From Lama glama (Eukaryota), in NCBI GenBank assembly GCA_028534125.1, contig CM052850.1, forward strand, positions 26,784,001 through 26,848,000: 64,000 nucleotides of DNA. The letters are read 5' to 3'. Shown piece by piece: positions 353 through 59,400 of this stretch (within the stretch, counting starts at the first letter, position 1; every line of letters starts with the position of its first letter). Both the position numbers and the translations under genes were made by a program. The notes below the pieces were generated by a model that saw only the letters and a program-made list of their open reading frames with translations, was not told the DNA's origin and searched no databases.

Positions 353-8583
<8,231 letters not shown>

Positions 8584-16014: not shown

Positions 16015-25257
<9,243 letters not shown>

Positions 25258-27889: not shown

Positions 27890-30110
27890 TTCTTACAACC
27901 TTTTAATTTTAACAAATGTAGCTTTGCCGGAGTGTTGCAAACACATTCCCACGTACCCGTCTCCTGGATTCTCTAAATGTTTGCATTTCGCCCCATTCCA
28001 CATAGTTCCTTTATGGAGCTGTCTGGCGCTCTCTGTGTATCCCTCCCAGACAAGGACATTACCTTATAGGGCTGCACTGCGGCCATAATGTCGGGTTAGC
28101 ATCAATCCGGTACCAAAAACCTACATCAGACCTTGTTCAGTTTGCCATTCACTGCATTGTCTTCAGCCTTTAACCCGCGAAGGTAGGTGACCCTCACACA
28201 AGCACAGGCTGGTTATTTTGAAGACTGTCCTTCAGTGTGGGATTTCCTGATGGCATTCAAGCTTTGCACTTTCAGCAGGACCTTCACAGAAGTGATGCTC
28301 TTCAGCGTGCCCTCTGTCCCCTTCCTGGAGACGCTGTGACCCGCCTGTCTCCTGTGCCCTTCTGACACTTTCTGGTCTTTTGTTAGGCACTTGCTTAGTC
28401 TAGCGCAGCAAGGCGTTCCAGGCTTACTCTATAATTTCCTCAGTCCCAGCCCTGAGACCAGTCATTTCTCCAAGGAGCCCTAGTACCTCCTGGAGTTCAC
28501 CCTGACACTCAGAATTTCAAAAGAAGGTTCACTCTTTCCCTTTTTCATATTTGGAATTTCCTCGCTTATGCTGAGAAACCTGGCTCCATTATCCATAACG
28601 TACTTGTTTGCTCAGTCTGGAGCAAAGTGCCTTCGGCATTGCTGACCTGTGCCAGTGGACAACCACTGACTAGCGTTTACTATGTGTTTACAGTTCTTTT
28701 TTGTCTTTACCTGAGGGCACACAGTCAAAATGCACTGGGGGTGTTTCTCCCCTTCATTGTGGGTGTGTAACTCATGTGAAATATGTTCTGTTTGTATATT
28801 CCATTGCATTTCCCTGTCCTTGTTTACTTCTGTTTGTGCAATACAGTGACGTGGTTCCCAAAGTCAGAACTTTTTATAAGTTTTCTTATAAAAAAACTTC
28901 ACGATAGTCAGGTGTCACCCCTACCCTGCAACCCATCTCTTTCGTCTTTGATTTCTCCTTCCCATGTTTCTTTTTGTACAAATGACTAAGATACCTGTAT
29001 ATTTTCTTACTTCTCCTTCTTCCACAGAACATTTTATGTGTGGCCATTTTTCAATTAACAGATTTGGAAACTGCTCCATATCAACTGAGTTCTTTCTTAT
29101 TCTGTCACTACCGCAGTCATCATCATTTATGTCTGCATTATATTCCATTGTGTGGAGCTGCCGTTTCACGTTTGACTACTGCATGAGACTAGCAGGCTGT
29201 TTCCTAGCTTTTGCAGTCACAAACGAGGCTGCAACAAATAATCTGTGCTTATGTATTTTCTTTTGTTGGAGGTGTATCATCAGGGAAAATCCTAAAATCG
29301 GGATTGCTAAATCCTACAAAATCCATTTTTTATTAGTGTTTGATGCACGTCCATAAGAGATGTACCAATTTGCTTTCCCACCAGTAATGAATGAGGGTAC
29401 CTGATACCCCACCAGCAGTATGTGTATTCATACTCTTTGATTATTTGATTAATGAAAAGTGGTATCTGTGTAGCTTTAATTTGCATTTCTCTGACTGACT
29501 GAGGTCAAACTTAGGCTTCAAGATCTAACTTATTTATGAGTTACATCTTCACTCCACTTTTCTATTAGATTTTTGGTATTTATTTTCCTTTCAGTCTTTA
29601 AGAATTCTTCATGTATCAGCGATATTAGCCCATTGCCTGTGAGATATTTTCTTCCTGGTGTCAGTTGCCTTGTTTGTAGTATCTTATTCTCATGGAAATG
29701 TTTTGTTCTGTTATATTTTCATATGGTCAAATTGATTCATCTTTTAAAATTTCATCTGGATTTTGAGTCATAGAAAGTCTTCCTCCACACCTGTGTCAAA
29801 CAGGACAGGCATTCGTGTGTGTGTTCTGCAGTACTTGTTGGGTGTCAGTTTTTACATTCAGATCCCTCATCTGTTTCTTTATTCTTGTGTGTGCTGTGAG
29901 ATATGAATTAACTGTTTCCAAATTTTCAGTTATCCTGCACTATTAAAAAAAAAGCCTATCTGTATCTATCTCTGAACTTTCTGTTTTACTCTACAGATTG
30001 GAATACTACACGGACTTAATCACAGACGCTTCATGGTGTGTTTTAATGTCCAGCAGGGCTAGTCTCCTCATAGTTTGCTTTAAATAACTTTTCCTCGGTA
30101 TTCTTTTATG
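27890..30110 (-). mobile_element. Old L1 (L1MC-like) fragments, antisense
   Basis: AT-rich block with CCCAGCCCTGAGACCAGTCATTTCTCCAAGGAGCCC (L1MC 3'UTR-like) and GTGGTATCT...TTTAATTTGCATTTCTCTGA (antisense ORF2 end). Boundaries are approximate. Confidence 0.6.
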
Positions 30111-30275
30111 CAACCTTTTTCAAGCACATATTTAAGTAAAATTTTTATGACAAAAGTTGATGCTCTCAAGTGTCAAAGTGAAAATACCAGAAACAGGGTT
30201 TCCAGGGATGTTACAGATCTGGGAGCGGAGGCGTGGCTGGCCTCACCCACCGAGGTCACAGGCCCTGAAGACAGA

Positions 30276-31907
30276 CTAGGACAGCTGCTGCTTTGAGCGC
30301 CGCTCTTTCTCACTGTGCAGCTCCCTGTAGCAGGTGATTGCATCACTGACTGCTCTTGAAACTTGCAGCGTCCACTCATCACCGGGGCTTCCACTGGTGA
30401 GGACCTGCAGGCCCGCCTCGAAATGTGACAAGGCGGCCGACAGCTCTGTGGTGGTCAGCTGACGCAGGACAGGGGCAGCATCGTCACTGTCCTCCTCTCT
30501 TGCCGGCTGCTGTTCCAGCTGCATCAGCTCCTCATTCGAGAGATCTTCCTCATGGGAGCACAGCAGCTGGTCCACCGCAGCTCCCAGCACCTCTCCAAGA
30601 GCCACATTCTGGGCAAGGGTCACAATATTTTGTCGAAGTTGTGCAATGTTGTCTGTTTGGGAAACACTCTGGAACTGAACACACTCTGGCCAAATCTTCT
30701 TCCACACGCTATTCATTGTTGCCGGTCTGAGCTCCTCCCAAGCTACTGCAATGTTGTCCACAGCATCCATGATGTTGTAGTTTCTCCAAAACTCCCTGAT
30801 TATAGCTGTATCCTCCCCATCTGTGGCTTCTAGGATGTGCTCAAAAGTCCTTCTCAGGTAATGAGCTTTGAAGGCAGAGGCTACACCTTGACCCATGGGC
30901 TGGATCAGGTCAGCTGTACTGTCATGAAGATATTCCACTCTCACGTTATCAGACAGATCGCTCAAATTTACTGGGTGGCACGGTGCACTGTCTAAGATGA
31001 GCAGTGCTTTGTTAGTGAGATTATTTTGGGCACAGTATTTTTCAACTGCAGGGCAAAAAAAGTACGTAAACCATTCATGAAAGATGCTCCTGGTTGCCCA
31101 GGCCTTTTTGTTTGAGCGCCAAATTACTGGCAGATTGGGCTTGGAGTACCCCTTCAGAGCCTTGGGGTTTTCTGAGTGGTACACCAGTAAGGGCTTCAAC
31201 TTGAAGTCCCCAGCTGCGTTGCCACCGAGCAGCAGCATCAGGCGTTCTCTGCATGACTTAAAGCCTGGCTCAGCTTTCTCTTCTACTGAAAGGAACGTTC
31301 CTTCAGGCATTCTTTTCCAATACAGACCTGTCTCATCTACATTAAAAACTTGCTGGGGGGTGTACTCACCTTCTTGGATAATGCTTTTCAGTATTTCTGG
31401 ATAGATATCCTTGTTGCCAGCGGCTGTGAGGTTCGTCTTGAAGTGAGGCAAACAATGGCGCTCCTTGAATCTCACAAACCACCCTTTACTTGCACTAAAC
31501 TTCTCTGTTTGAGAACTTTCACCCTGTTCACGCTGCAAGTCATCAAACAAACTCTTAGCCTTCTCCTGAATAACTGCGACACTCACGGGCACGTTTCGCT
31601 GGCTCTGGTCTTCAAGCCACACACGCAATAGGCGCTCCATGGTCTCCATGATTGCACTTCGGTGGCGAGTCAATCGAGAGGCTCTCAAGGGAGTAGCTAT
31701 TTGTGAACTCGCTTTGATTTTCTCTTTATTATCTCGGATCGTTGCCACTGTGGAGACAGCGAGGCCTAAGGTCTTTGCAATTTGGCTGAGCTTTTCACCC
31801 ACTTCAAATCGTCTTAACACTTCTAATTTTATGTCGAGCGTAATTGCCTTCCGTTCCCTTTTGGCACTCGGGGTGACCATTGCATTTAGGGGCCTTTTCC
31901 TAGGCAT
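30276..31907 (-). CDS. CENPBD1: CENP-B DNA-binding-domain protein 1; full-length domesticated pogo/Tigger transposase (HTH-psq, HTH_Tnp_Tc5, DDE_1, acidic C-terminus), 543 aa, single coding exon
   Basis: Uninterrupted ORF starting [10 protein letters not shown]. Contains [13 protein letters not shown] (psq HTH), [38 protein letters not shown] and QPMGQG. Its position between DEF8 and AFG3L1, head-to-head with AFG3L1, matches CENPBD1 synteny. Confidence 0.9.
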
Positions 31908-32199
31908 CTCTGCCTCCAGAATGTACTGAAATGACAGCAGTCCCCGGTGCAAGAAAGCCTGTGGTTCCTCTATGCTCCCTTGCAGAACTAGGGAAAGCGA
32001 AAATGGGGCTTCGAGGAGGCGCAGGCTGACGACCTCGGACACGGGAAAGGGTCACCACAGGCCTGCCTAGCCACGCTGCCCAGAAACAGAGCAGTTCATT
32101 CTGCCCTGGGCAGTGTGGGCCTCCAGTATCAATCAGCGTCCAAATTCCTGGAAAGCAGGCACATCTAAACTGGCGTGTGCCTCCGTGATGCAGAACACA

Positions 32200-33230
32200 G
32201 AAATCCGTGCAAAAGAATAGCGCCGCCGGGCGGCGCACGGCGCACAGGCTCCCAGGTCCCGGAGGAAGCTCAGGAAAGCAGGCCAGCGCGCCGCCGCCGG
32301 CCTTCGCTTTGTGAGCCGCTTCCCAGGGAGGACCCCAGAAATGGGTGTTCTTGGAGATGCCCTATTTAAAATAAGTCTCGGGCCGCTGGCCATCCTCTTA
32401 GCGCCTCGCTCGAGCCGGCCACTGGGGTTCCGGCGCCCAGCTGTCTGGGCAGGGCAAGCAGCGCTCACGTTCGTATCCTAAAGAGTCGGGCAATAGAGTA
32501 GACACCTAACGAGAGGCCCCGGGAGCGCGCCCTGTCCTTACTGCGCACGCGTGAGGCTTCGCCGAGGTCGGCGCGGGGGCGTGGCGCCTTATGACCTATT
32601 TGCCGCAATACTGCGCCTGCGCGCGCCCGAGCGGCGCGAGGTCAGGGTTGGAAATGTTGCAGTGGCTGGCGGCATGTCGGTGGCCGGGCCGCTCGCCGTG
32701 CTGTGGCGATGCGGCGGTGGCCCGCGAGGCGGCAGGACGGCCCGGGCAGGCTCGAGGGCCCTCGGAGCCGCCCGGCAGGTGAGCGGGGAGGTGCTGGCTC
32801 CCCGCCGGATCCGGGGGGCGGGAGTGGGGGGGGGGCGGCCGCGCTCGTCGCCGCGGTGACGCCATCCAGGTGCGCCGGCCGGCGCGGTGGGGCGCCGTGC
32901 AGGAACACGGTGAGAGAACGCGAGGGGAGCTCGGGAGCCGAGGGGCTGCGACCTCACGTCCGGCCGTGCGGCCCCGGGCTCCTCCCCGGCCCTGCGGCCG
33001 AGGCGGCTGCCCCTGGCCGGAACCTGTCTCCCTCTGTTCTCTGAGCCCCCGCCCTTCTCCCTGCGGCGCCTTCCGCCCTTGGAAAATTCCCGCTGCCCCT
33101 GCCTCCTTATTGCCCTCCCCAAGGAGCCCCACGTTGAGTGCACTGCGTTCAAGCCTCGCTCCACTGCGAACCTGCCCTGTCTTCTCGGGCACTCGCTCCG
33201 ACTGCGAAGTGGTGTCCTCCTGGGCTCAGC
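32200..33230. promoter_or_regulatory. Bidirectional CpG island promoter for CENPBD1 and AFG3L1, with two NRF1-like motifs (32542-32551, 32612-32623)
   Basis: High CpG density between divergent genes; TGCGCACGCG and TGCGCCTGCGCG resemble the NRF1 consensus YGCGCAYGCGCR. Confidence 0.75.
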
Positions 33231-36200
33231 GGTAGTACTACCTCTGCTCTGTCAGTCTCGCAGAGTTGCTCTCCTATATGAAGATGGACATGAAGGAGTT
33301 TTATAAAGTGTTAACATAGTTGTTATTCATCGTTTTTGGAGCCCAGTTCCATCACTGTAATAATAGCTTACACTGTTTGAGGGCTTCCGTGCTAAGGGCT
33401 CTACAGGAATTATTTTATTTGAGTCATAACAATACTGCGGGTAGGCGCTTGTATAATCCCATTTTATAGAAGAGGAAATATAAGACCGCAGCTGGTCGGC
33501 TGCTGCTCCAGCCTCTTCACTTTTAGATACTTCTGTACTGTACGCCCTCCCCTGGGTTCGGTACTGTGAAATATTATTCCACATTTTACGGTTGCTTTTT
33601 TTCTTTTTTCTTTTTTGTATTGATATAGCCTTAGGGTGCTGTCACATTGAAGGACCTCAGTGGTTTTGGTTGTGAAGGGAAGAAGTTGGATGATTTTTGA
33701 GTTCCTTCCCAGACTCTGTTATTCATCTGTTGAGTCTCCTAGCTGGGTGACATCATGGTGAGCAGGACAGGCAAGGGCTCTGCCCGGTTAACTGCTCTGC
33801 TTTGAGGGCTTGGTGATTTGTAGGCTGAGGGGCCATGCAAAGGCTGAGGGCGAAGTAGCAGTCAGCACTGTAGGTAAAGGATATACCCGTGCAGTCTGCA
33901 CTCATCAGGTGGAACCCTATGTTCTGGAAGCTTCTGTGCAGGTATTTTTTCATTCAGTGAGTTTCCTGCACTGCCCCTGCCACCCAAGAGGGGGAACCAG
34001 ACAACAAGCACGTATATAGCATGAAGGTGGTTTTACGAGGTGTGAAGGAAGAGAAGATAGAGCAAAGGCAGTGAGAATGAAGAGAAGGGAGTGGAGGAGA
34101 ATGAATGCCACTTTGTCTCAGGTGGGATAGTCGGCTCCTGAAGGGAGGAGGGTACTGAGCGGTGGCTCGCCAGCAGGTGGACGAGGGTTGGTGAGGCTGC
34201 ACGTGAGTGACTCTGTTACACAGACCAGGGTCCCTTGATGTGTGATCTGGCGCAGAAAGGACAGTGGTGCTTTGCCTGTCAGCAATGGGGCAGCCTTGCT
34301 GAGCCAGCTTCATGTCTTGGCTTTGCTTATGCAAAGACCAATTTAGAAAGCTCATCTAAACCAAATGCCAAGAATGGATAGTAGACCCCTGTCTTTGAGA
34401 GTTGCAGCCTACCGAATGTGGTCCCCTGACTAATCAGAAAAGGATTAGATCTCAAAGAAAAAGAGTTGGATGTTTTATCAAGTTTTGGGTACTGAAGTGT
34501 CGTCCTTTGTACCTCTAGGGTTGTAGACCACCTGACACTGCTGTCGAGCCACCTGCATCGCGCTGATTCTGGAGAGACCTGGGAGGTTTGGGCACCAGAG
34601 TCCTCATTGTGTACCTCCGGCTCTGGGTTATCGTACCTCAGGCACTTGTGGACCGCTCTGCACTTCTGCTTGTCTGCCCTGCAGTGGGAACAGTGGCAAG
34701 TACTTTCTCAGCAGGGGCATTGAGGGTCGGAGGAGGTGACAGAAGCACCTGGCGCACATCCGGTGCCTAGGGACCTGTGCTCCTTCATCTAAATCTCTTT
34801 TCCCGGTGACGTGCCTCTGTGACGTCAGGTCCTCGTTCTGCTGTGCACGGTGACTGGCTGCAGCAGGGAGGTTCATTCCCAGTGCAGAAGTTTCAGGATC
34901 CCCAACACCGTTACCTGTGGCTTCTTTCTGAGTCCCCCTGCATAGATTTTCCCCGATTTTAACGTCTTTCTCATAGCTTACCTTACTTTTTAGTTCTTCT
35001 GGTCTTTGATAGGCGTATTTGAATACTTTGGCTTAGTAGCAAATTAATCATTAGGGAATGAGTTTACTTTGAAGAGTGCACTGCCTCACCGTGAAAGACA
35101 GCATGGCTGGAATAACACAGTTGTCACCCGCAGACCCGGCTTCATTAGGATAAAACACTGGGGCCATCCCGATCTGCGGCTGGGTTGGACTTCTCTGAGC
35201 ACAGTCAGCACTGTGAGTGTGGTTGGTTCTGTCTTTTCAGTGTGGTGGCTTTTCTTGTGCCTGCTTTTGCTCTGGTGGCTTTCTTCTACAATAGTGGAAA
35301 CTGAAATGTCTCTAGTCCTGTCCTTGACTGGTGTTAAGTACTGTTAGCAGCTTTTGGTAAAAGCTGTCATTTTCCACTTTGAGGACTAAAGAAAATACAG
35401 GGTCTGGAAAAATGTTTGCTTTCCTGACAAAAACACTTATCTTTGGCTGAATAAAGATAAATTGTAGTACCCTTTGGTTTTTAAATTTCACATGATTTTA
35501 ATGTTAGAGTAACTTTTTTTTTTTTGAGGCTGTAATATTTTCAGTGAGCAAAATTGCCTTGGGCAAGAGGTGATTAGTGTGCTTTTGTTTGACAGCTGTA
35601 GCTATGAAAATTTGTCATGCATTTCTACATTGAATTTATTTTCCACTCATCCTGTTTGAATCATATGATAGACAAGGGCGTCCGGGTTATACCTCAGCCC
35701 GAATCCTGGCCCCTTTGGACCTGTAATGGCCACTGTGAGAAAATGCCCCATGGTATTGCAGAAGCAGCTAATTGTCTCTCGAGTTTCAATGCCTCTAGGG
35801 AACCTGCTTTCAGCAGCTGGCTCTGCAGACGAGACCGCCGTCATTTTCCTAGTGGCTGTGTTCAGAACCATCCAGAGGTACCTGTCTTTCCCCTTGCATC
35901 ACTGACAGCACAAGGCTTATGGGAACTGAGTGTGGCTTCCTCTGTATCCTCCGTAGTGGGGAACTGGGGACAGGGTGCACGACCAGGAGGCTCTGTGCCC
36001 CGCCTTAGCTTCCACACTGAGTTACATTTAGCTCATCCTGTTTCTGGGTCACCTCTACATATTTATGGTTTTGATATATCGTTGAAGACGGTGAAAGAGA
36101 AACTTCCAGGAGGAAGTTGCTTGATAAATCTTCAGGGTTGCATGGGAGCAAACCTTTGTTCCTGTGCATCTGAGGGCTGGTTAGGCCAAATCTCATGTTC

Positions 36201-42731: not shown

Positions 42732-43145
<414 letters not shown>

Positions 43146-44459
43146 TGAGCTTCGTTCTGGTTTGTTGTTGACAGCTTAGCCTTTTGTGACTTTGGTCCAT
43201 CGCAGTGGGGAGAGGAAACAGCGTTTGCAGAGTAGAGCAGTGAAAATCCTCTCATCTGATGCGCTCGAGACCACAGTGAGGTGACTGTTCTAAAGTATGA
43301 AACTGGAATCACAGGAACAGTACATGTCTACCTGGAGTGTGTTTATTTCCACTCCAGGCACAAATGTGTGTTTTTGCTTGGTGTCTTGGAGGGCAGGCCT
43401 TCCTTTGAGTTTGGCACCCTATTCAAACCCTCTGTTACATTTCTTGCATAAACCACTTACCGTCTGTGGTTGTGATTTTCATTCAAGTACAGAGTCCTGT
43501 ATTTTTATGACAGTCTTTCACGTTTTCTTATTTGTTCAGTTTGGCAGCCTTGTTTTTTTTTTTTAATGCAGTTTGCTTTTTTGCTTTATTATCCAAAGCC
43601 TTCAGCTTTGTTTTTGAAGGAACCGCTTTCTTTACTCCTATTTTACTAACTTATGTGGTATTAAAGTACATAATTAAAACAACAAGCACTGCCCTTGTAA
43701 ACAGGTCTGGGACCAGATGCAGCTGCCTCTTGGGAAGCCCTTGACCCAGCAGGTGGAGCAGGCATGCACTGTGGCTGCAGGTCAGGTGTGGCACAGGGAA
43801 ACGGGGGCTCAGGGGTGGACCTCTGAGGGCCCGGCAGAAGCTGTGAGTCCTTTTCCCAGAAAGATTTGTGTCTCACAGGAAGTAGATTCACAGATCCCTC
43901 GAGGCATCCCTGGGCTCTGGACCAGGCTGAGAGCCCTCCTGGTATAGACCGTCCTCACCCCACAGAGCTTCCCCAACATGGTCCCTGCAGGGAGGGTACT
44001 GCCGACACCTTACTCTGAACAACAATAGAAGATGACTGACCATTGGGGATTAGAGGGCTGGAGGCATGTGTTTCTGCCTGACAACCTGGTGAGAGCTGGC
44101 TGGAAAGCTCACGAGTGTGGCCGGTGCACAAACCGCCTTCTGCTCCTGTTGGAGCTGCACCAGCAGGGAGCCCAGCTGTCGCTCACCTTGGCTTAACAGG
44201 CAGGTGCTGCTGGGGGTGCTTCTGTGTGCCTTTTCAGGAATTTTTTCTGGGGCTTGTGTTTCCTGGGAAAGCATGTGTGGGTAAACAGTGGGCGTGGCAC
44301 AGGCAGGTGACAGAAGACCCTCTCGTGTGGAGGGAGGGCACTCTGTCAAGTCTGCCTGGTGGTGAGGACGCTGGGGCCTGAGTGACTTCCCAGCTCCTGC
44401 TGGGTGTGATCTGCAGTAAACGTGGGCACAGGGACCCTGGGTCCACTGCCTCCTGTCTT

Positions 44460-44591: not shown

Positions 44592-47500
44592 CCACTGCCT
44601 CCTGTCTTGAAGAGACTGGCAGGGATGGAGCGTGAAGACCCTGTGCATGGTGGGCTGTGACACCTCCATGAACCCCACCTCCCCATTCACAAGACATGGG
44701 GCCCCAGCACCTGTGTGTTGAGTTGTGGCTCCCTCCTCCCCCACTTTACATATTTTGTTTCTGTTCTTAAAGACTTAAAAAAATTACTTTATGGTCTCTT
44801 TTGAAATAATTAGATATTAACCCACAGCACTGACTGGAAATAAAGCAACATAAGCCCCCCTTTAAGTCTCTCCTCAGTTTCCAGGCATAATGGTGTCCAC
44901 AGAAGGAGCACTAAAGTGTGTTACTAGGGCATGAATTGTGATTCTAACCCTCAAGTCAGTGCAGAGGAGGGCAGGCCATAGACAAGGAAGCACAGCAGTG
45001 GTGGCCACACAGCTGCTGCCTTCCTGCTGCCTTGGGGCCAGCTGGACAGAGTCTCTGTGGCCACAGTATACACCACACCCTGTGACCCAGCTAGTCCTGC
45101 CTGGGAGCGTTTCCTGAAGAAATAACGTGCTCAGCTGTGGGGAGAGGGCACAGGGGGCTTTGTGTGTCTGCACCATCTGAACGTTTTACCATGAAACAGT
45201 AAACCGGTTTTACTGTGAACACGCATTCATCTCACAAGCAGAAAATGTTAAACGGAAAGCATACCTCAGTCTGCCAGCACGGCGCACTCTTAGAAGGCAT
45301 CCTTGGAGGGCGCCTGCTTCAGTGGGAGGGGGCGCTCTGCTCCCTCTGGCTCCATCCGTCCCCTTAAGAACCAGGTGTCACCTTTTTGTTCCAGGGAGCC
45401 ATGCTCACAGGTCCTCCTGGTGCTGGCAAAACTTCTCACCAAGGTGACTGCGGGGGAGGCCAGTGTGCCTGTCATCACTGTGAATGGGTCAGAGTTCTTG
45501 AAAGTGTTTGTGGGCGTTGGGCCAGCTTGGGTAGGTGGATGCGCCCTATCCCTGCCCCGGGTCTGTGAGGGGCCCTGGCGGTGGGCACCAAGCAGACCAC
45601 AGATGTGCAGGGGAGACCCAGGTGGGCAGACAGCAGCTGAGGTGGGTCAGGTTCCAGAAGAGGGGGCTCAAGTTGGTAGATTCTTCTTCCTGTCTTTGTG
45701 CCGGTAACAGAGTAGACTCTGTGGTGGACTCCTGTTTCAGGTTTGTGACATGTTTGTGATGGCCTGAAAAATGTCTCTTGTATCTTATTCATTGATGAGA
45801 TGGGTGCAATTGGCAGGAAATGAGGCTGCAGGCACTTTGGTTGCCAGAGCGAGCAGGAGAACACCTTGAACCAGATGCTGGTGGAGATGGATGGTGAGAC
45901 CCCACATTACCGTCTGCCAGGCCTTCATTTCTGTGCAGTAGCTCCCTGGGCGAGAACCCCTGATTGTTCTGTTTGAGAAAGGCTGTTTTCAGGCACACGT
46001 ACTGGAGAGAGCTGTTCGGTTTCACACAGGCCCCACTGTCAGCAGGAGGACCAGGCGTTGGTGCCCTCCCTGGCCCGGGGCTCACAGGTGCCCTGGCTGC
46101 CTCTTGCACCAAAATCTCTCTCCTCTCTCCCCCTCGAGACTTGTGCTCAGAGAGGCTCCAGCCGAGTCTGACAGCCTGCCAGGACTGCTGACGCCTCCCG
46201 GGAAGTGTCTAGGCCTTCGTGCCAGTTTTTGAATTTTGGAAAGCTGTCTGCGGTCCTTTGGCAGATCTTGTCCTCTCTTCATCTTTGTAACTGTGTTGGG
46301 GTTCGCGAGATTACTCCTGGTTTGGTGATCCACTGGAAGGCCTCCGTGTTTAATTGTGTTCGTACTGTGGTTGACTTCAGTGACAGGACACAGGAGAATC
46401 ACGGGGAAGAGGTGCCTGGGCCAGGCCCAGGGAAGCCGGCCACAGCTTCCAGAGGCCCTTCCTATGGAGTCTCAGGGCACACTTCCTCCCCTGGCAGCGG
46501 GCCAGATGCCACTCGGGAGTGCTGTCCGCCAGGGTCAGGTTTCCCAAGGGGGTTGGGTCATGCGGCGCCCTGCGCCAGCACATCCCGAGGGGGAAGGTGC
46601 GTGCTTGGCGTGAAGCACACTGTTTGCAGAGTGTAGACACAGGGGGCCCCACTTACCAGGGAGCAATGGAGACCCTCCTTAAATCCCGGGTCCCAGAGAT
46701 GGTCGGGGGCCCTGTGAGCAGGCCTTGCCAAAGATGTGCTGGATGGGACTGCCGTGTGTGCTTTTCTGAACAGGCCAGAATGTTGCTCAAGTCTTCAGTT
46801 GTATTGAGTATCCAACAGTCATTCTAATTAAGCTGTTACTGTGTCCTGATGTCTGGAGGGGCTGATGGGAGGGACAGTTGGAGGGGAAGGAGGTTGGGAG
46901 CACTTCCTCTCCCCTGGCCCTGCCAGGTGCCCCGTTCTCCTTTGTACGGCCATACCTGCCCCTGTCCCGTCTGGCTCCCTGGTCTGCAAGCCTTTCAGCA
47001 CCTGGGTGATCCAGGGCACTGACAGTGGTAGGGGGAGGTCTCCCTGACCCCTGCAGGTTGTCGCGTGGTGTCAGAGGCTGGCAGGAACCAATAATGAGTT
47101 AGGATGGGGGTCCACACCCTGAGACTGGGCTGTGGGGGTCCCAGTTAGCTGAGGAATGGCTGGTTACCCACCAGTGCAGATGCCTCTCAGAGCAGTGGGG
47201 GACTGTGGGGGCCTAGCTGCTGGTTCCTGCGTGGCAGAGTGGGTGTCAGAGCCAGCCCTGGGTGTGAGTGTCTGCCCCACACTGAGCAGCCTGTGCAGTG
47301 TGCTGTGGAGCCAGTGGGAGGAGACGCAGAGCCAGCGTGGGGCTTCCCAGGGTGGGCAGTGGTTCTGGAAGTTCGGGCCAGGTGTGCAGGGGAGAGCAGG
47401 GGAGAGGAGAGGCCCCTCGGAGTGTGGTGCTGACCTGACAGGTGCCGACCGCACCCTCTCCTCGGCCTTACCTGCTCCTCTTGCGTCCAGGGTTCAACTC

Positions 47501-50905: not shown

Positions 50906-53900
50906 AACCAAAAAAACTGGCTAAAAGCAATGGTGACTGACAAAGCAGCTTGCATCTCCTTCCAGTCCTTGACCTGGTCTGCTCTGGTCCCTTAACTGGA
51001 GACTTTCCTGTGACAGTCCGCCCTGGGGCGCCAATGGGACTGCTCCCACTGGCAGGCGCTCGTACCTCTAATGTTTGCACTGAAGTGGCCCTAATCACTG
51101 CCCGCCACCTCAGCCCTTTAGTTCCGGACAAACACTTTGAGCAGGCCATCGCGAGGATCATCGGAGGTGAGCTGGGCTGCCTTGAGGAGGGGACGTTCCA
51201 GCTCTGGCCTGCAGCAGGCTCACCCTGGGGCCCTAGCTTCGTGTCAGTGCACTGGAGCCGGGAGCGGTCTTCCAGACCGGAATTGGGAACTGGGGTCTGT
51301 CAGCAGCTCCCGTATTCTTTCTGGAGCAACATTGAGAATCTCAAAGATGAGGGACCTTCAGGGTGCTGAATCAGATCCAGGTTTGGGTTCTGACTGGACA
51401 GGAGGAATGTCTGCTGGGTGCTTCCCCCTGAGTGCTTGCAGGGGCCATCCCAGCGCTCCTACTGGGCCAGTGCTCTGTGAGGGGTGAAGGCTGGAGTAGG
51501 GGCTTCAGCGTGGGGGTAGGGGTCTCCTGAGGGCCTTTCCAGGACGGAGGTCAGGGAGGTGTCTGTGTGGCCAGCAGCTCAGCTGTTCATACTCCGGCCC
51601 CATGGCTGTGATCACCAGCTCACCCAGACAGCAGGTTGGCCACCGTACTTTGTTTGAGTTTCCCTTTTTATCGACGTGTAACACAACCAGAGAAGTGCGG
51701 AGAGAGTATCAGTAGCCCAGGACAGTCGCCACAGCTGCTCAAGGGCGATCTGGTGGCTCTGGCGAGCTGACTGGCCACAAAGCTGCGCTCAGCACGAGGG
51801 GTCTGTGCCTTGCTGTGCTCTGTTTCCTGCCTGTGACTGGGCTGTAGACCATGCAGAGAATTCCTCCTCGTTTCTCGTACGGACAGCATCACTTCCCTCA
51901 AGCCATGAAAAGTAGCTAATCTCTCACCCACCCCAGAGCCATCTGCTGCTTGTAAGGGAGATGGGTTGGGACCTGGTGTTTCCATAGAGCAGAAGGCAGC
52001 ATAGTGTCTAGTGTGTCTGGCATGTGGGGATGGCGCAGAGTGGGGTCTGAGGAGTGTGTGTGGAGCAGACGGCTGGGTCTGTTCTGGCTGGACACAGGCT
52101 CTGACCAGCCCCCAGCATGCCCCAAGTGCAGAGTGGGAACTTGGTGCCCACTCCTCAGCTGTCCGTTCCTCCTCTCCCTCTTACGAGGACTTTGATTTGT
52201 AGGTCTGGAGAAGATGACGCAGGTCCTCAGCCTGGAGAGAAGACAACGGTGGCCTACATGGTGGTGGGCTGGTTCCTGGAGCACGCAGATCCCCTGTTGA
52301 AAGTTGGTCACGTCCCTTCGCGTGTCTGCACGGGGAGGGGCAGGGCCCACTCCCCTCCTAGCTCGTCCCTTGGTCTCCAGGCGTGGGTGCCTGTGTGTAG
52401 CATGTGGCCACATGGGCACAGTACCTTCAAGGTGGCAGCCTTTTTGCTTTCCAAGGAACGTAGTGGTCTAGAATTTGTTATAAGACTCCTTGAGGGGTGA
52501 GTGGGTAGAGAGCTGGGTGCTGGTTTCAGGAGGGGTTTGGGTGCTGGCCACCTGACATCTGCTGAGGTTTTACCCGATGGCTGGCTCCTCTGCAGGGTAG
52601 GTGGGGGGGGTTTCCATGTTAATTGTTGGGGTGACCCCCGTCAGTGGTGGGGCCCAGGGTCTGCTCTCCTTCCACACTCTTGCAGGGAGACCAGTGCTCA
52701 GAGGGGCAAGGTTGGTCCGGGATGCCCCAGGACTGGGGCTGTGTCTTGCAGGTGTCCATCATCCCCCGGGGCAAGGGGCTGGGCTTTGCCCAGTGTGTGC
52801 CCCCAGAGCAGTACCTGCACACGCAGGAGCAGCTCTTTGACTGCGTGTGCATGCTGCTGGGCAGCAGGGTGGCTGGAAAGCTGTTTTTCTGCCAGGTCAC
52901 CACAGGGGCCCAGTATGACTTGAGGGAGGTAACCCAGAACGCCTATGCCCAGGTAGAGCAGCGCTGGGTGGGGGGCTCTGCACGCGAGTCTGGCCAGGCT
53001 CACCTCCCTCCACCCCCACTCCAGATAGTGCAGTTTGGGATGAGTGAGAAGCTGGGTCAGATGTCCGATTTTCCCCAGCAAGGCGAAGGGCAGGCGGGGA
53101 GGCTGTACAGCGAGGCCACAGCTTGGCTTATCGATGAGGAGGTGAGGTACCTCATCAGCTCCACCCACGAGACCTGCTGACGCAGTGCTGGGAGCAGGTG
53201 GACAAGGCAAGTGCGGCTGGGGCGGCGCCCATCCTCCGGGAGTTCTGGTGATTCGCAGGCTGCTGACGGGCAGTGGGACTTGCAGGTGGGCAGGCGGCTG
53301 CTGGAGAAGGAGGTGCTGGAGCAGGCTGACATGGTGGAGCTGCTAGGCCCATGGCCCTTCACCGAGAAGACCACCTACAAGGAGTTTGTGGAGGGCACAG
53401 GCGGCCTGGAGGAGGACACATCCCTTCCCGAGGGGCTGAAGGGCTGGAACCTGGGGCAGCAGTGGGCACGGAGCCCAGCGTGTGGGAGAGCCTAGCCTAG
53501 TGCCTCTGCTTTGGAGGGCAGCTTCTGGAATCACTGGAAAACAAACGAAAACGTGGTGACTGCAAATGGGCAGTTGCAAATAAGGGTTTTCTGAGCCCAC
53601 AGGTTCCTGCTCCCAGAACACGCCTGTTCCCTGAGAGGGGGCTGGGACCCTGTTCCTGAGTCATGGGGGACAGTGGTGGGCAGTGGGCTTCTCTGATGGG
53701 GACCCCCAAGGAGGGGGAGGGGGCTTTTGGCCCAGTTCAGAAATGCTCAAGGTTTGGTGAGGTGGCAGAATTAAGAAAAGGAAAATATAAGCCAGGTATC
53801 CAGGGAAATAGCTGTTTGGGTTGGTGGAAGGCCTGTTTGTTGGGATGGAGGGAACTCAGCACCTCCTGCCGGTGTGTGGTTGGTGTAGGGTGGTGGAGCC

Positions 53901-56454: not shown

Positions 56455-59400
56455 CTAGTCTTCCTTGGGCCTCTCCACGGTGAGAAGTGTGTCCACGATG
56501 GTGGGTTGCCGCTCAGGGTCGCCAAAGGGCTGTTTCTCACGGTTCTTCTCAGCCCTGGTGCGGGTCCAGGATGGGGAGCGCAGACAGCCGGCCCGAGGCA
56601 GTGGGTGTAGGCCTGGTGGGAACACGGGGTGGGGTCAGTATGGCTTGGAGTCTCAGGTCACTCCTGCAGCTACTGGGTTGGGCATGTGTGTGCCTCCAAC
56701 ATGGGGTCTGGCCACATGTTGGGGTCCTCTGGGCACCAGCAATGCGTACTTCTGGGTCTGGGTGCAGCGTGGGCTGGGGATTACCTGATGCCCTCAGGAG
56801 GGTCCTGGTGCAGCCGAGGCCCAGCTCTCCAGCCTGCATGGGTTGTGAGCAGGGAGGGAGGAAGGCTCTGGGCCCCCCACAGCCCTAGTGGCTCCTTTGC
56901 CATTTCTGAGGCCCGTGAGTTCTGGGCCAAGGGCAGCGCTTCCTGGAACTGAGATGAGGAGCGGCCACCCACTTTGTACTCAGCCTACTTGTGATTAAAT
57001 CCATGTAGTGAATTCTACCTTCAGTGGGACAGTGGCTGTGGCCTTTTGTTGGCGTTTCAAGAATGAAAGTGAGGAGGAGTCGAAAGTTCCTTAAAGTTGG
57101 CATACAGGTGTGTAAAATGCAGAAACGGTGCATGAAGTGGCACTTTGTTGACAAATACTTAAACACACATGAGAAATAAAGAAAATTGTTTTCCAAAATG
57201 AGGGTCTCCAGGGAGCGATGCTTGGTAGTCTTGGGCCCCAGGACCTCCCACAGTGCCCTCTAGGCCCAGCACCAGCCCCACCTGCAGGCGAGTCGCTGGT
57301 CAGGTTCTCGTCATCTGAGTCGGCGAAGACCTCAGCCAGCTCCTGGTCGGACATGTCGGTCAGCTCGGTGAGGTCCAGGAGGTCAAAGTGCACCTCCAGG
57401 GAGGAGACGCTGCTCAGAGGCTCTGGGGACAAAGGAGCTTGTCAGCAGGGTGTTCTCCACCAAGGCTGCCCCATGAGGCCCAGGTGAAGCCCAGTGTGGG
57501 CCAGTGGCGGGGTGGGGGGCCGCAGACATGGCCCAGCTCTGTTCTTTGAGGCCCAGCGGAGCCCCTGAGAGCGGAGGAGTGTTTGGACAGGATGTGGACC
57601 CCGCCCTGTCCCCCAGCCTGTACGTACGTCGTCTCTCTGTGACCTGCAGGAGCCCTGGAGCAGGTGCTGGGACGCCCACCTCCTCAGCCACAGGCGAGTG
57701 GAGGCTGTTCCCTGTCCCAGGGACTGGGGTACCCAGGGCAGCCTGTGGCACCGCAATCTCCTTAACTATTTCTGCAACAAAGAAGGTGTTGGTTACCCCA
57801 AGGGCACTGGGGTCTCCCACCTCCACCCCCAGGAGGAGACATGGGATTCCACCTGACCCTGACCCCCACCCAGGACACAGGTGGGAGGACTTGAGAACCT
57901 CCTCTGAGGCCCCGGGCAGTGACCAGGGGTGGCCTTGGGCCAGAAAGCCAGGCAAGGGGTAGGGGCTTCTCTGAGGAGGCTGCCCTTCTCCATTACTCTG
58001 GGTGAGGAAAAGGCTGACTTCCAGACCCTCTGCCCTGAGCACCTGAGCAGGAATGAAGGCAGACCATGTAGGTCTCATGGGGACACTTGCTGGTCCTGTC
58101 AGAGACCCTAGTATCCCAATACTGTCACCTGTCTCGACTTTGGTCCAAACTAGGGTCCGGTGGTTGGTCATGTGTGTCCTTGGCCTTTGGTTCCCTTTAA
58201 TCCACAATGGCGCCTGCTCACCTATGTGTCCTATGTTGTGTTTGAATTCAAAAGAACACATTCTTGTAGCAAAAGAGTTACTGGACGGGTAGGTAGCAGC
58301 CTCTCCCCACCAGCCCCCCTCATGACGGGATGCTCGTCCAGGGTTTTACACGCGGTATTCCCCTGTAATTGCTCATATTTTTGTGTTTGTTTTCATGTGA
58401 TTGCTCGTTTCTTGTACTTTTCGTCGGGTGAGAGCTGCAGGCTCTTCAGGGATCTGCTTGGTGAGGACGGTGCCACTCATAGATGGGGCCCCTACCCCAT
58501 GGAGGCACCACCCTCCCCCGTCTCCACACAGCGGGGGGTCCCAATCACCTGTCAGGCATATGCCCTGGGGCAGCTGGACCCCTTGGCTCCCCTGTGTCCC
58601 CACTGTTGCTGCCCTCTCCTGAGACCCCTCCACACAGATATCCCACCTTCCCTCAGCGAGGGACCCCCTCGATGAACAGGTGCTCAGTCAAGAGTGAGGA
58701 GTGCCCTCCTGGCCCCTGTAGCAGTGTGGTGGGCTGAGCCACCCCAGGGGTGAGACTGAGGGCTGGGTGTGCACCAGCCACAAGAGCAGCTGCCAGGGGT
58801 CCTGGCTGGGGCGCCCAATGCCAACAGCTGCCTGTGAAGAGTGGGCCTGTGTGGTCAGTGGGCTGGACTCGCCTGCCGGGATGTGCGTCTGGAGGGTCCC
58901 CAGCTGAGTGGAAAGACAGTGACGTGGATTCTCAGGTGCAGAGCTGCCCTTGAGGTGGGCGTCTGCCCTGGGAAGCGGGACTGCGGGCGGGGCTTCCCAG
59001 CTCTGCCTGGTGCTGTGTCATCACACAGGGCCTGAGGCCGGACGGGGCTCGGGGTCTGGTTTCCACCTTGCTGCTGCATTCGGAACTTGGCTTCTGAGCA
59101 TCTTCAAAGGGTAGAGTTACACCCACCAGTGTCAGGGCCTACCCAGCCCGCGATGGGCAAGGGCACCTTCCTAACCAGAGGACAGGAGAGCTGGGGGAAC
59201 GGGAAATCTCCTGAGCCTCAGACCAGATTGAATCCTTGCTGAGGGACAAGGGCTAAGAAACCTCTTGAGGGCCTTTGCTCTGCAGGACGCTGTTCTGTTT
59301 CCTCAAAGGGGAGGCACAGCAACCCGGTCCCCCTCACAGAGAGGCATGTGTGGCCTGGGGTGGTGGGTGACCCTGCCTGGTAGGGGAGGCGCTGCCATCT

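Follow-up and report, generated by a model that had tools for sequence, protein, structure and literature searches.

In the present study, we analyzed a 64,000-nt stretch of the Lama glama genome (hereafter the window; all coordinates are window positions), in which an open reading frame (ORF) listing and its translation placed the gene CENPBD1 on the minus strand as a single exon. The coding sequence, at 30276-31907 (-), consists of 543 codons that run from an ATG at 31907 to a TAG stop at 30276-30278 (-), and the encoded protein was 98% identical to CENPBD1 from Camelus ferus in a protein search. Considering the orthologs, domains, and flanking sequences described below, we regard it as highly probable that this ORF is the camelid ortholog of a domesticated, non-catalytic host gene that is derived from a Tigger transposase and is under selection. 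The frame remains open for 45 codons 5' of the ATG (31908-32042, minus strand), up to a GTG at 32042, and the extended product of 588 amino acids is also called on 7 Logan contigs; we assign the start to 31907 because every ortholog begins at the methionine of MP(G/R)KRP.

Regarding the anatomy of the protein, a basic stretch at its N terminus (RKRP...KRERK, residues 3-20; 31848-31901, minus strand), read from the translation, resembles a bipartite nuclear localization signal and may act as one; K4, R5, and R17-K20 were invariant in an alignment of 32 orthologs. Two helix-turn-helix (HTH) domains were recognized by Pfam, namely CENP-B_N (residues 16-67; 31707-31862, minus strand; E 3.6e-07) and HTH_Tnp_Tc5 (residues 88-154; 31446-31646, minus strand; E 2.1e-15), both of which align to 1HLV, the DNA-binding domain of CENP-B. 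They precede DDE_1, the RNase H-like transposase core (residues 221-402; 30702-31247, minus strand), which was supported by Pfam (E 2.3e-40) and by structural matches in Foldseek. In an AlphaFold2 model based on 83 relatives, with a mean predicted local distance difference test (pLDDT) score of 73.6, the protein consists of two bundles of helices, an alpha/beta core, an acidic linker that is disordered, with pLDDT below 50 (residues 464-484; 30456-30518, minus strand), and a terminal pair of long helices (residues 486-542; 30282-30452, minus strand), the individual helices of which span residues 486-505 and 511-542. This helical region is conserved in Tigger-like relatives in alignments and is a candidate self-association module that may have been inherited from the transposase. 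The C-terminal 140 amino acids gave no Pfam match, CENP-B_dimeris included, even at E <= 10, and CENP-B_dimeris was not matched in the whole protein at E <= 0.01. The original prediction, an earlier reading of this DNA, had described a 543-codon ORF with no stop or frameshift, two N-terminal HTH domains followed by a complete DDE domain, and an acidic, helical C terminus, and these features were confirmed by the translation, the Pfam scan, and the structural model, respectively.

The protein search retrieved approximately 40 near-full-length CENPBD1 orthologs of 540-548 amino acids from Laurasiatheria, Afrotheria, and marsupials. Identities were 80-88% in horse, seals, cats, dogs, cetaceans, hippopotamus, bats, mole, manatee, elephant, aardvark, golden mole, and elephant shrews, and 68-73% in koala, Dromiciops, possums, antechinus, and Tasmanian devil, while the next-best group, comprising marsupial SCAN-domain fusions and proteins annotated as "TIGD1-like", reached 63% at most. 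The closest relatives are, from this identity gap, annotated CENPBD1 proteins that stand clearly apart from other Tigger-derived proteins. The protein encoded in the window already has an exact counterpart in NCBI, UniRef, and nr, and it differs at 11 amino acids (e.g., T13I, I26M, and A66V) from the three Camelus CENPBD1 entries of Gao et al. (2020, Mobile DNA 11:25; PMC7386202). These differences point to a camelid outside Camelus, in agreement with DNA runs from four organisms that contain at least 93% of the sampled words. Camelus and other placental CENPBD1 proteins are the same gene as that in the window, with the same length, domains, catalytic signature, and truncated C-terminal end.

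Conservation among the 32 aligned orthologs, which had a mean column identity of 87%, was unevenly distributed over the protein. Invariant residues occupied 73 of the 154 positions in the DNA-binding region (approximately 47%), with the first HTH alone reaching 35 of 52 (67%), and 87 of the 182 positions in DDE_1 (approximately 48%); in the C-terminal part, 31 of 141 positions (22%) were invariant. This pattern bears on the possibility that CENPBD1 is a neutrally drifting relic, a pseudogene the frame of which stayed open by chance in camelids. The gene has been lost or truncated in humans and many other lineages and is, hence, dispensable somewhere, which would fit such a relic. However, 543 codons are free of stops, dozens of species that diverged as early as the marsupial-placental split keep the frame unbroken, conservation is biased toward the domains, and the published Ka/Ks for CENPBD1 is 0.177 +/- 0.098 (n=62, P<0.05; PMC7386202). 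Neutral drift is unlikely because the frame is intact in approximately 40 species across that split and because conservation follows the domains, and we rejected a chance-open ORF as an extremely improbable explanation. Purifying selection on CENPBD1 in the lineages that keep the gene is instead supported, as judged from the published Ka/Ks, the intactness of the ORF throughout therians, and the structured conservation.

The catalytic triad of this domesticated transposase is altered. The first position (FNVDETG) is D191 (31335-31337, minus strand), which is aspartate in placentals and glycine in the marsupial orthologs; the second (LILDSAP) is D306 (30990-30992, minus strand), which is glutamate in the aligned marsupials; and the third (QPMGQGV) is G339, encoded by GGT (30891-30893, minus strand), at which active Tigger transposases have aspartate. 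As 32 residues separate the second position from the third, the signature is DD32G, as also recorded for the 543-amino-acid entries of Camelus bactrianus, C. dromedarius, and C. ferus (PMC7386202). Many Tigger-like transposases from fish, turtle, and octopus read QPMDQG at the position of residue 339, and the GGT codon is a single base from an aspartate codon. The complete DDD triad of an active pogo/Tigger transposon is, thus, absent from CENPBD1, and the claim of a catalytically altered transposase was borne out, with G339 in the place of the third aspartate.

An alternative is that CENPBD1 is still a nuclease or recombinase with a non-canonical active site, in which two aspartates would cooperate with another acidic residue. 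The retention of D191 and D306 in placentals and a DDE_1 core conserved to the same degree as the DNA-binding domains are compatible with such an enzyme. Against this, the third residue, although glycine in most of the aligned orthologs, is serine in horse and manatee, cysteine in hippopotamus, and alanine in mole, and marsupial orthologs, the triads of which were tabulated as GE32G or GD32G (PMC7386202), lack the first aspartate and carry glutamate at the second position, leaving no catalytic geometry common to the family. Since position 339 varies and the marsupial triads have changed, no acidic triad is conserved across the CENPBD1 family. We therefore consider a surviving nuclease to be highly improbable and, from the residues present, catalysis by CENPBD1 to be very unlikely. 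The conservation of a dead catalytic core to the same extent as the DNA-binding domains argues for a retained, non-catalytic role of the core.

The ends of a transposon were also sought around the ORF. Inverted-repeat scans of 28500-33500 and 29420-36000 yielded only pairs of 15-26 nt with 71-87% complementarity, none of which meaningfully brackets the ORF. In camelid Tigger1 elements, the ends begin with CAGGC and TA duplications flank them (PMC7386202), and the start of the Tigger1 terminal inverted repeat (TIR) in camelid copies, CAGGCATACCTC, which was taken from the supplementary table of Gao et al. (PMC7386202), had no match with <=2 mismatches between 26070 and 38816. TIRs with a TA target-site duplication, which are expected of an active pogo/Tigger transposon, were accordingly not found at CENPBD1, in agreement with the earlier statement that TIRs are missing, and no second copy of CENPBD1 was present within the 64-kb window. 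A CpG island at about 32000-33250 (GC 0.61-0.77; CpG observed/expected 0.8-1.0), for which no strand is assigned, instead lies directly upstream of the gene, and is likely to be a promoter shared head-to-head with an AFG3L1-like gene on the plus strand.

Another reading is that CENPBD1 is a Tigger/pogo copy that was inserted recently or remains mobile, with an ORF that is intact by chance. The whole transposase architecture and the 50-57% identity to Tigger-like transposases of fish and turtles are features that a mobile copy would share. However, there are no TIRs and no Tigger TIR start for several kb, the third catalytic aspartate is substituted, orthologs from marsupials through camelids have the same length, the same glycine, and the same truncated end, and a likely CpG-island promoter stands in place of transposon ends. 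A recent or mobile transposon was effectively refuted by this evidence, and the probability that we leave to it is vanishingly small.

Candidate signals for the expression of the domesticated gene were found on both sides of the coding sequence. A candidate 3' splice site, ctgctgtcatttcAG (…tgtcatttcAG; 31926-31940, minus strand, with tcatttcAG at 31926-31934), read from the nucleotide sequence, is located 18 nt before the ATG, inside the 45-codon upstream extension, and suggests a separate 5' untranslated exon in the CpG island. Candidate polyadenylation signals, an ATTAAA ending at 30047 and an AATAAA ending at 29883, are present 3' of the stop codon (29878-30047, minus strand). RNA-seq assemblies from three or four studies contain 25-47% of the sampled words of 29000-34000, and two of these studies are labeled as reproductive-system samples; this share fits a transcript of approximately 2 kb in a 5-kb stretch and is suggestive.

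The C-terminal end of CENPBD1 differs from that of its transposase relatives. Among the fish and turtle Tigger-like relatives that were aligned, 11 of 13 extend past the last helix with Q-x-x-[L/F]-[D/E]-x-[F/I/L]-[F/L], which follows ...K/R-x-Q, as in QQSLDKFF, QPSLDMFF, and QTTLDNFF. This tail looks like a PCNA-interacting (PIP) box, and a PCNA-binding domain has been reported at the C-terminal end of the pogo transposase (Warbrick et al., 1998, as cited in PMC4231638). Every aligned CENPBD1 ortholog ends two residues past that glutamine, at KQLS and the stop; the camelid proteins, with one extra glutamine before LS, end in KQQLS and the stop (30276-30293, minus strand), located where the Tigger-like relatives run on. 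Because CENPBD1 orthologs stop before a tail that is present in 11 of the 13 relatives, the domesticated protein seems to have shed a putative PCNA-docking tail, in addition to catalysis and the transposon ends. The position of this end, exactly before the PIP-box-like tail, represents a small, testable addition to the published record.

Tigger-family pogo transposases, both Tigger1-like and those annotated as "TIGD1-like" in fish, turtles, and octopus, share the arrangement of CENP-B_N, HTH_Tnp_Tc5, DDE_1, and C-terminal helices with CENPBD1 at 50-57% identity; however, many of them retain the third aspartate and the PIP-box-like tail, whereas CENPBD1 has glycine, no tail, and no TIRs. Besides these transposases, JRK, JRKL, TIGD2, TIGD5, and TIGD7 belong to the same class of origin and have the same architecture, with Ka/Ks well below 1 and triads that are partly or fully degraded (PMC7386202). 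They are separate domestications that are continuous in mammals, and only CENPBD1 has a patchy distribution (PMC7386202). In terms of structure, the best Foldseek matches were the Mos1 mariner paired-end complex, the catalytic domains of SETMAR (Metnase) and Sleeping Beauty, and 1HLV. Mos1, SETMAR, and Sleeping Beauty provided the best matches for the layout of HTH domains and catalytic core; however, they are only 10-14% identical to CENPBD1 and, as enzymes of the Tc1/mariner superfamily, have full or partial activity.

CENP-B itself was likewise domesticated from a transposase of the pogo superfamily, has two HTH domains paired at the N terminus, and carries a DDE core that is dead; 1HLV is structurally alignable with CENPBD1. 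The shared domain order and the alignment of the N terminus to 1HLV raise the possibility that CENPBD1 acts like CENP-B by binding centromeres or satellites, which would here be camelid satellites. However, although 1HLV was the sole match in a sequence search of the PDB, the match was weak (28.4 bits, E 7e-06; 25% identity in Foldseek), and the CENP-B_dimeris domain and long acidic tracts of CENP-B are both absent from CENPBD1. The CENPBD1 gene is missing in many mammals. CENPB and CENPBD1 are independent domestications, the former derived from pogoR and the latter from Tigger (PMC7386202), and it is improbable that a protein with conservation extending from marsupials to camelids would be tuned to rapidly evolving, lineage-specific satellites. 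We consider a centromeric role for CENPBD1 to be quite improbable and rejected it as unlikely due to its origin from another pogo family, the lack of CENP-B_dimeris, and its strong conservation across therians.

Two groups of related proteins were encountered in the protein search. The paralogs nearest to CENPBD1, with 63% identity, come from marsupials and are 712-784 amino acids long; a SCAN domain (PF02023) is fused to a Tigger transposase in them, and it is possible that these represent host-transposase fusion genes. A second "TIGD1-like" group is represented in camel, cattle, manatee, and possum. It shares 53-60% identity with CENPBD1, has asparagine at the third triad position (QPMNQG) and C-terminal ends of its own, and may be another domesticated Tigger gene. 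A metagenome scan for the DNA of CENPBD1 orthologs revealed no ortholog; it returned six environmental contigs that encode fragments of distant Tigger-like transposases with 28-54% identity, three of which came from the sample series Ga0307474, and these are probably DNA of small eukaryotes in the samples.

Regarding the neighboring genes, an ORF at 52644-53180 (+) encodes a Peptidase_M41 domain (Pfam E 1.5e-26), which fits AFG3L1, and an ORF at 57091-57432 (-) encodes a Dysbindin domain (Pfam E 1.8e-25), which fits DBNDD1 and is presumably an exon. In the reference gene order, CENPBD1 neighbors AFG3L1 and DBNDD1, and the two ORFs are located on the corresponding side of CENPBD1. The ORFs 42801-43148 and 45303-45707 resemble AFG3L exons by eye and had no Pfam match. 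DEF8 had no significant Pfam match, with an ORF at 21133-21441 appearing DEF8-like by eye only. AFG3L1-like exons are distributed across 32654-53500 (+), head-to-head with CENPBD1 over the CpG island, and several motif positions in the AFG3L1-like ORFs appeared to be altered by eye. The window contains two runs of N, at 7725-7947 (223 bases) and 8207-8538 (332 bases).

An extensive description of this gene has previously been published. Gao et al. (2020; PMC7386202) included CENPBD1 among twelve pogo-derived vertebrate genes and described it as a protein of approximately 540 amino acids with a mean identity of 79.5% (n=63), a CENP-B_N/HTH_Tnp_Tc5 and DDE_1 architecture, and the DD32G signature. 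They attributed it to the Tigger family, with emergence in Theria, and reported that it is continuous in Laurasiatheria, absent from Lagomorpha and Scandentia as well as Xenarthra, and lacking in most primates and rodents (PMC7386202). Homo sapiens and mouse were left blank in their CENPBD1 table (PMC7386202), and the pseudogene-style names CENPBD1P1 and CENPBD1P are in use in other papers.

The original prediction had identified the ORF as full-length CENPBD1, a domesticated pogo/Tigger transposase, which the identity to the Camelus ferus protein corroborates, and its view of human CENPBD1 as a pseudogene-like remnant is broadly in line with the blank table entry and the pseudogene-style names. 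Its suggestion that it is this lineage that keeps the gene was overstated, as the gene is no camelid speciality; full-length orthologs are present across Laurasiatheria, Afrotheria, and marsupials, and the unusual event is, therefore, the loss in Euarchontoglires and Xenarthra, not the retention in camelids. Nor does the locus represent an undescribed system, with the exact protein in NCBI and UniRef and its architecture, DD32G signature, Ka/Ks, and spread published in 2020 (PMC7386202). The ORF in the window is the camelid copy of a known, annotated, and published domesticated transposase, an ordinary gene that is retained by most therian lineages. Its discovery value is small because the gene is annotated in this genome, and its architecture, triad, selection, and patchy distribution were published in 2020, including those of Camelus.

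Taken together, these results make it highly probable that CENPBD1 is a single-copy host gene that originated from the capture of a Tigger-family pogo transposase by the ancestor that marsupials and placentals share. Its product would be unable to cut or paste DNA, would be imported into the nucleus by its basic N terminus (RKRP…KRERK), and may bind a fixed DNA motif through its two HTH domains, as in CENP-B and the pogo transposase. On the basis of domain content, we consider it reasonably likely, with moderate confidence, that sequence-specific DNA binding is the core activity of CENPBD1. The most economical guess for the target is a motif that derives from the terminal repeats of Tigger elements. 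Self-association or the recruitment of partners may rest on a scaffold formed by the conserved dead core and the C-terminal pair of helices, and the gene would be transcribed from the CpG island that it shares head-to-head with AFG3L1.

Several points weigh against this account. Repeated loss in primates, rodents, lagomorphs, tree shrews, xenarthrans, and some insectivores and bats shows that the function is dispensable in many mammals. The DNA binding, nuclear localization, dimerization, and target motif of CENPBD1 are all inferred from homology, and the literature searches that were run found no experiments on its function. The RNA signal is not assignable to the ORF, the 5-kb stretch sampled including the CpG island and possibly the first exon of the neighbor, and the RNA runs may contain DNA.

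A more far-reaching proposal, which we regard as doubtful, is that CENPBD1 is a Tigger-derived transcription or chromatin factor that has been stripped of catalysis and its PCNA-docking tail but remains linked to the fossil terminal repeats of Tigger, of which therian genomes contain thousands. If this is true, the repeated loss of the gene in Euarchontoglires and Xenarthra, as against Cetartiodactyla, Carnivora, bats, and Afrotheria, which strictly retain it, would mark a regulatory or genome-defense role that varies among lineages. Camelids would, moreover, retain CENPBD1 while the head-to-head AFG3L1 may be decaying, in which case upkeep of the shared promoter would serve CENPBD1 only. Research has focused on humans, in which CENPBD1 is truncated and carries pseudogene-style names, and on mice, for which the published table is blank; the DNA target and partners of CENPBD1 would be found only in species that keep the gene, such as cattle, dog, horse, and camelids.

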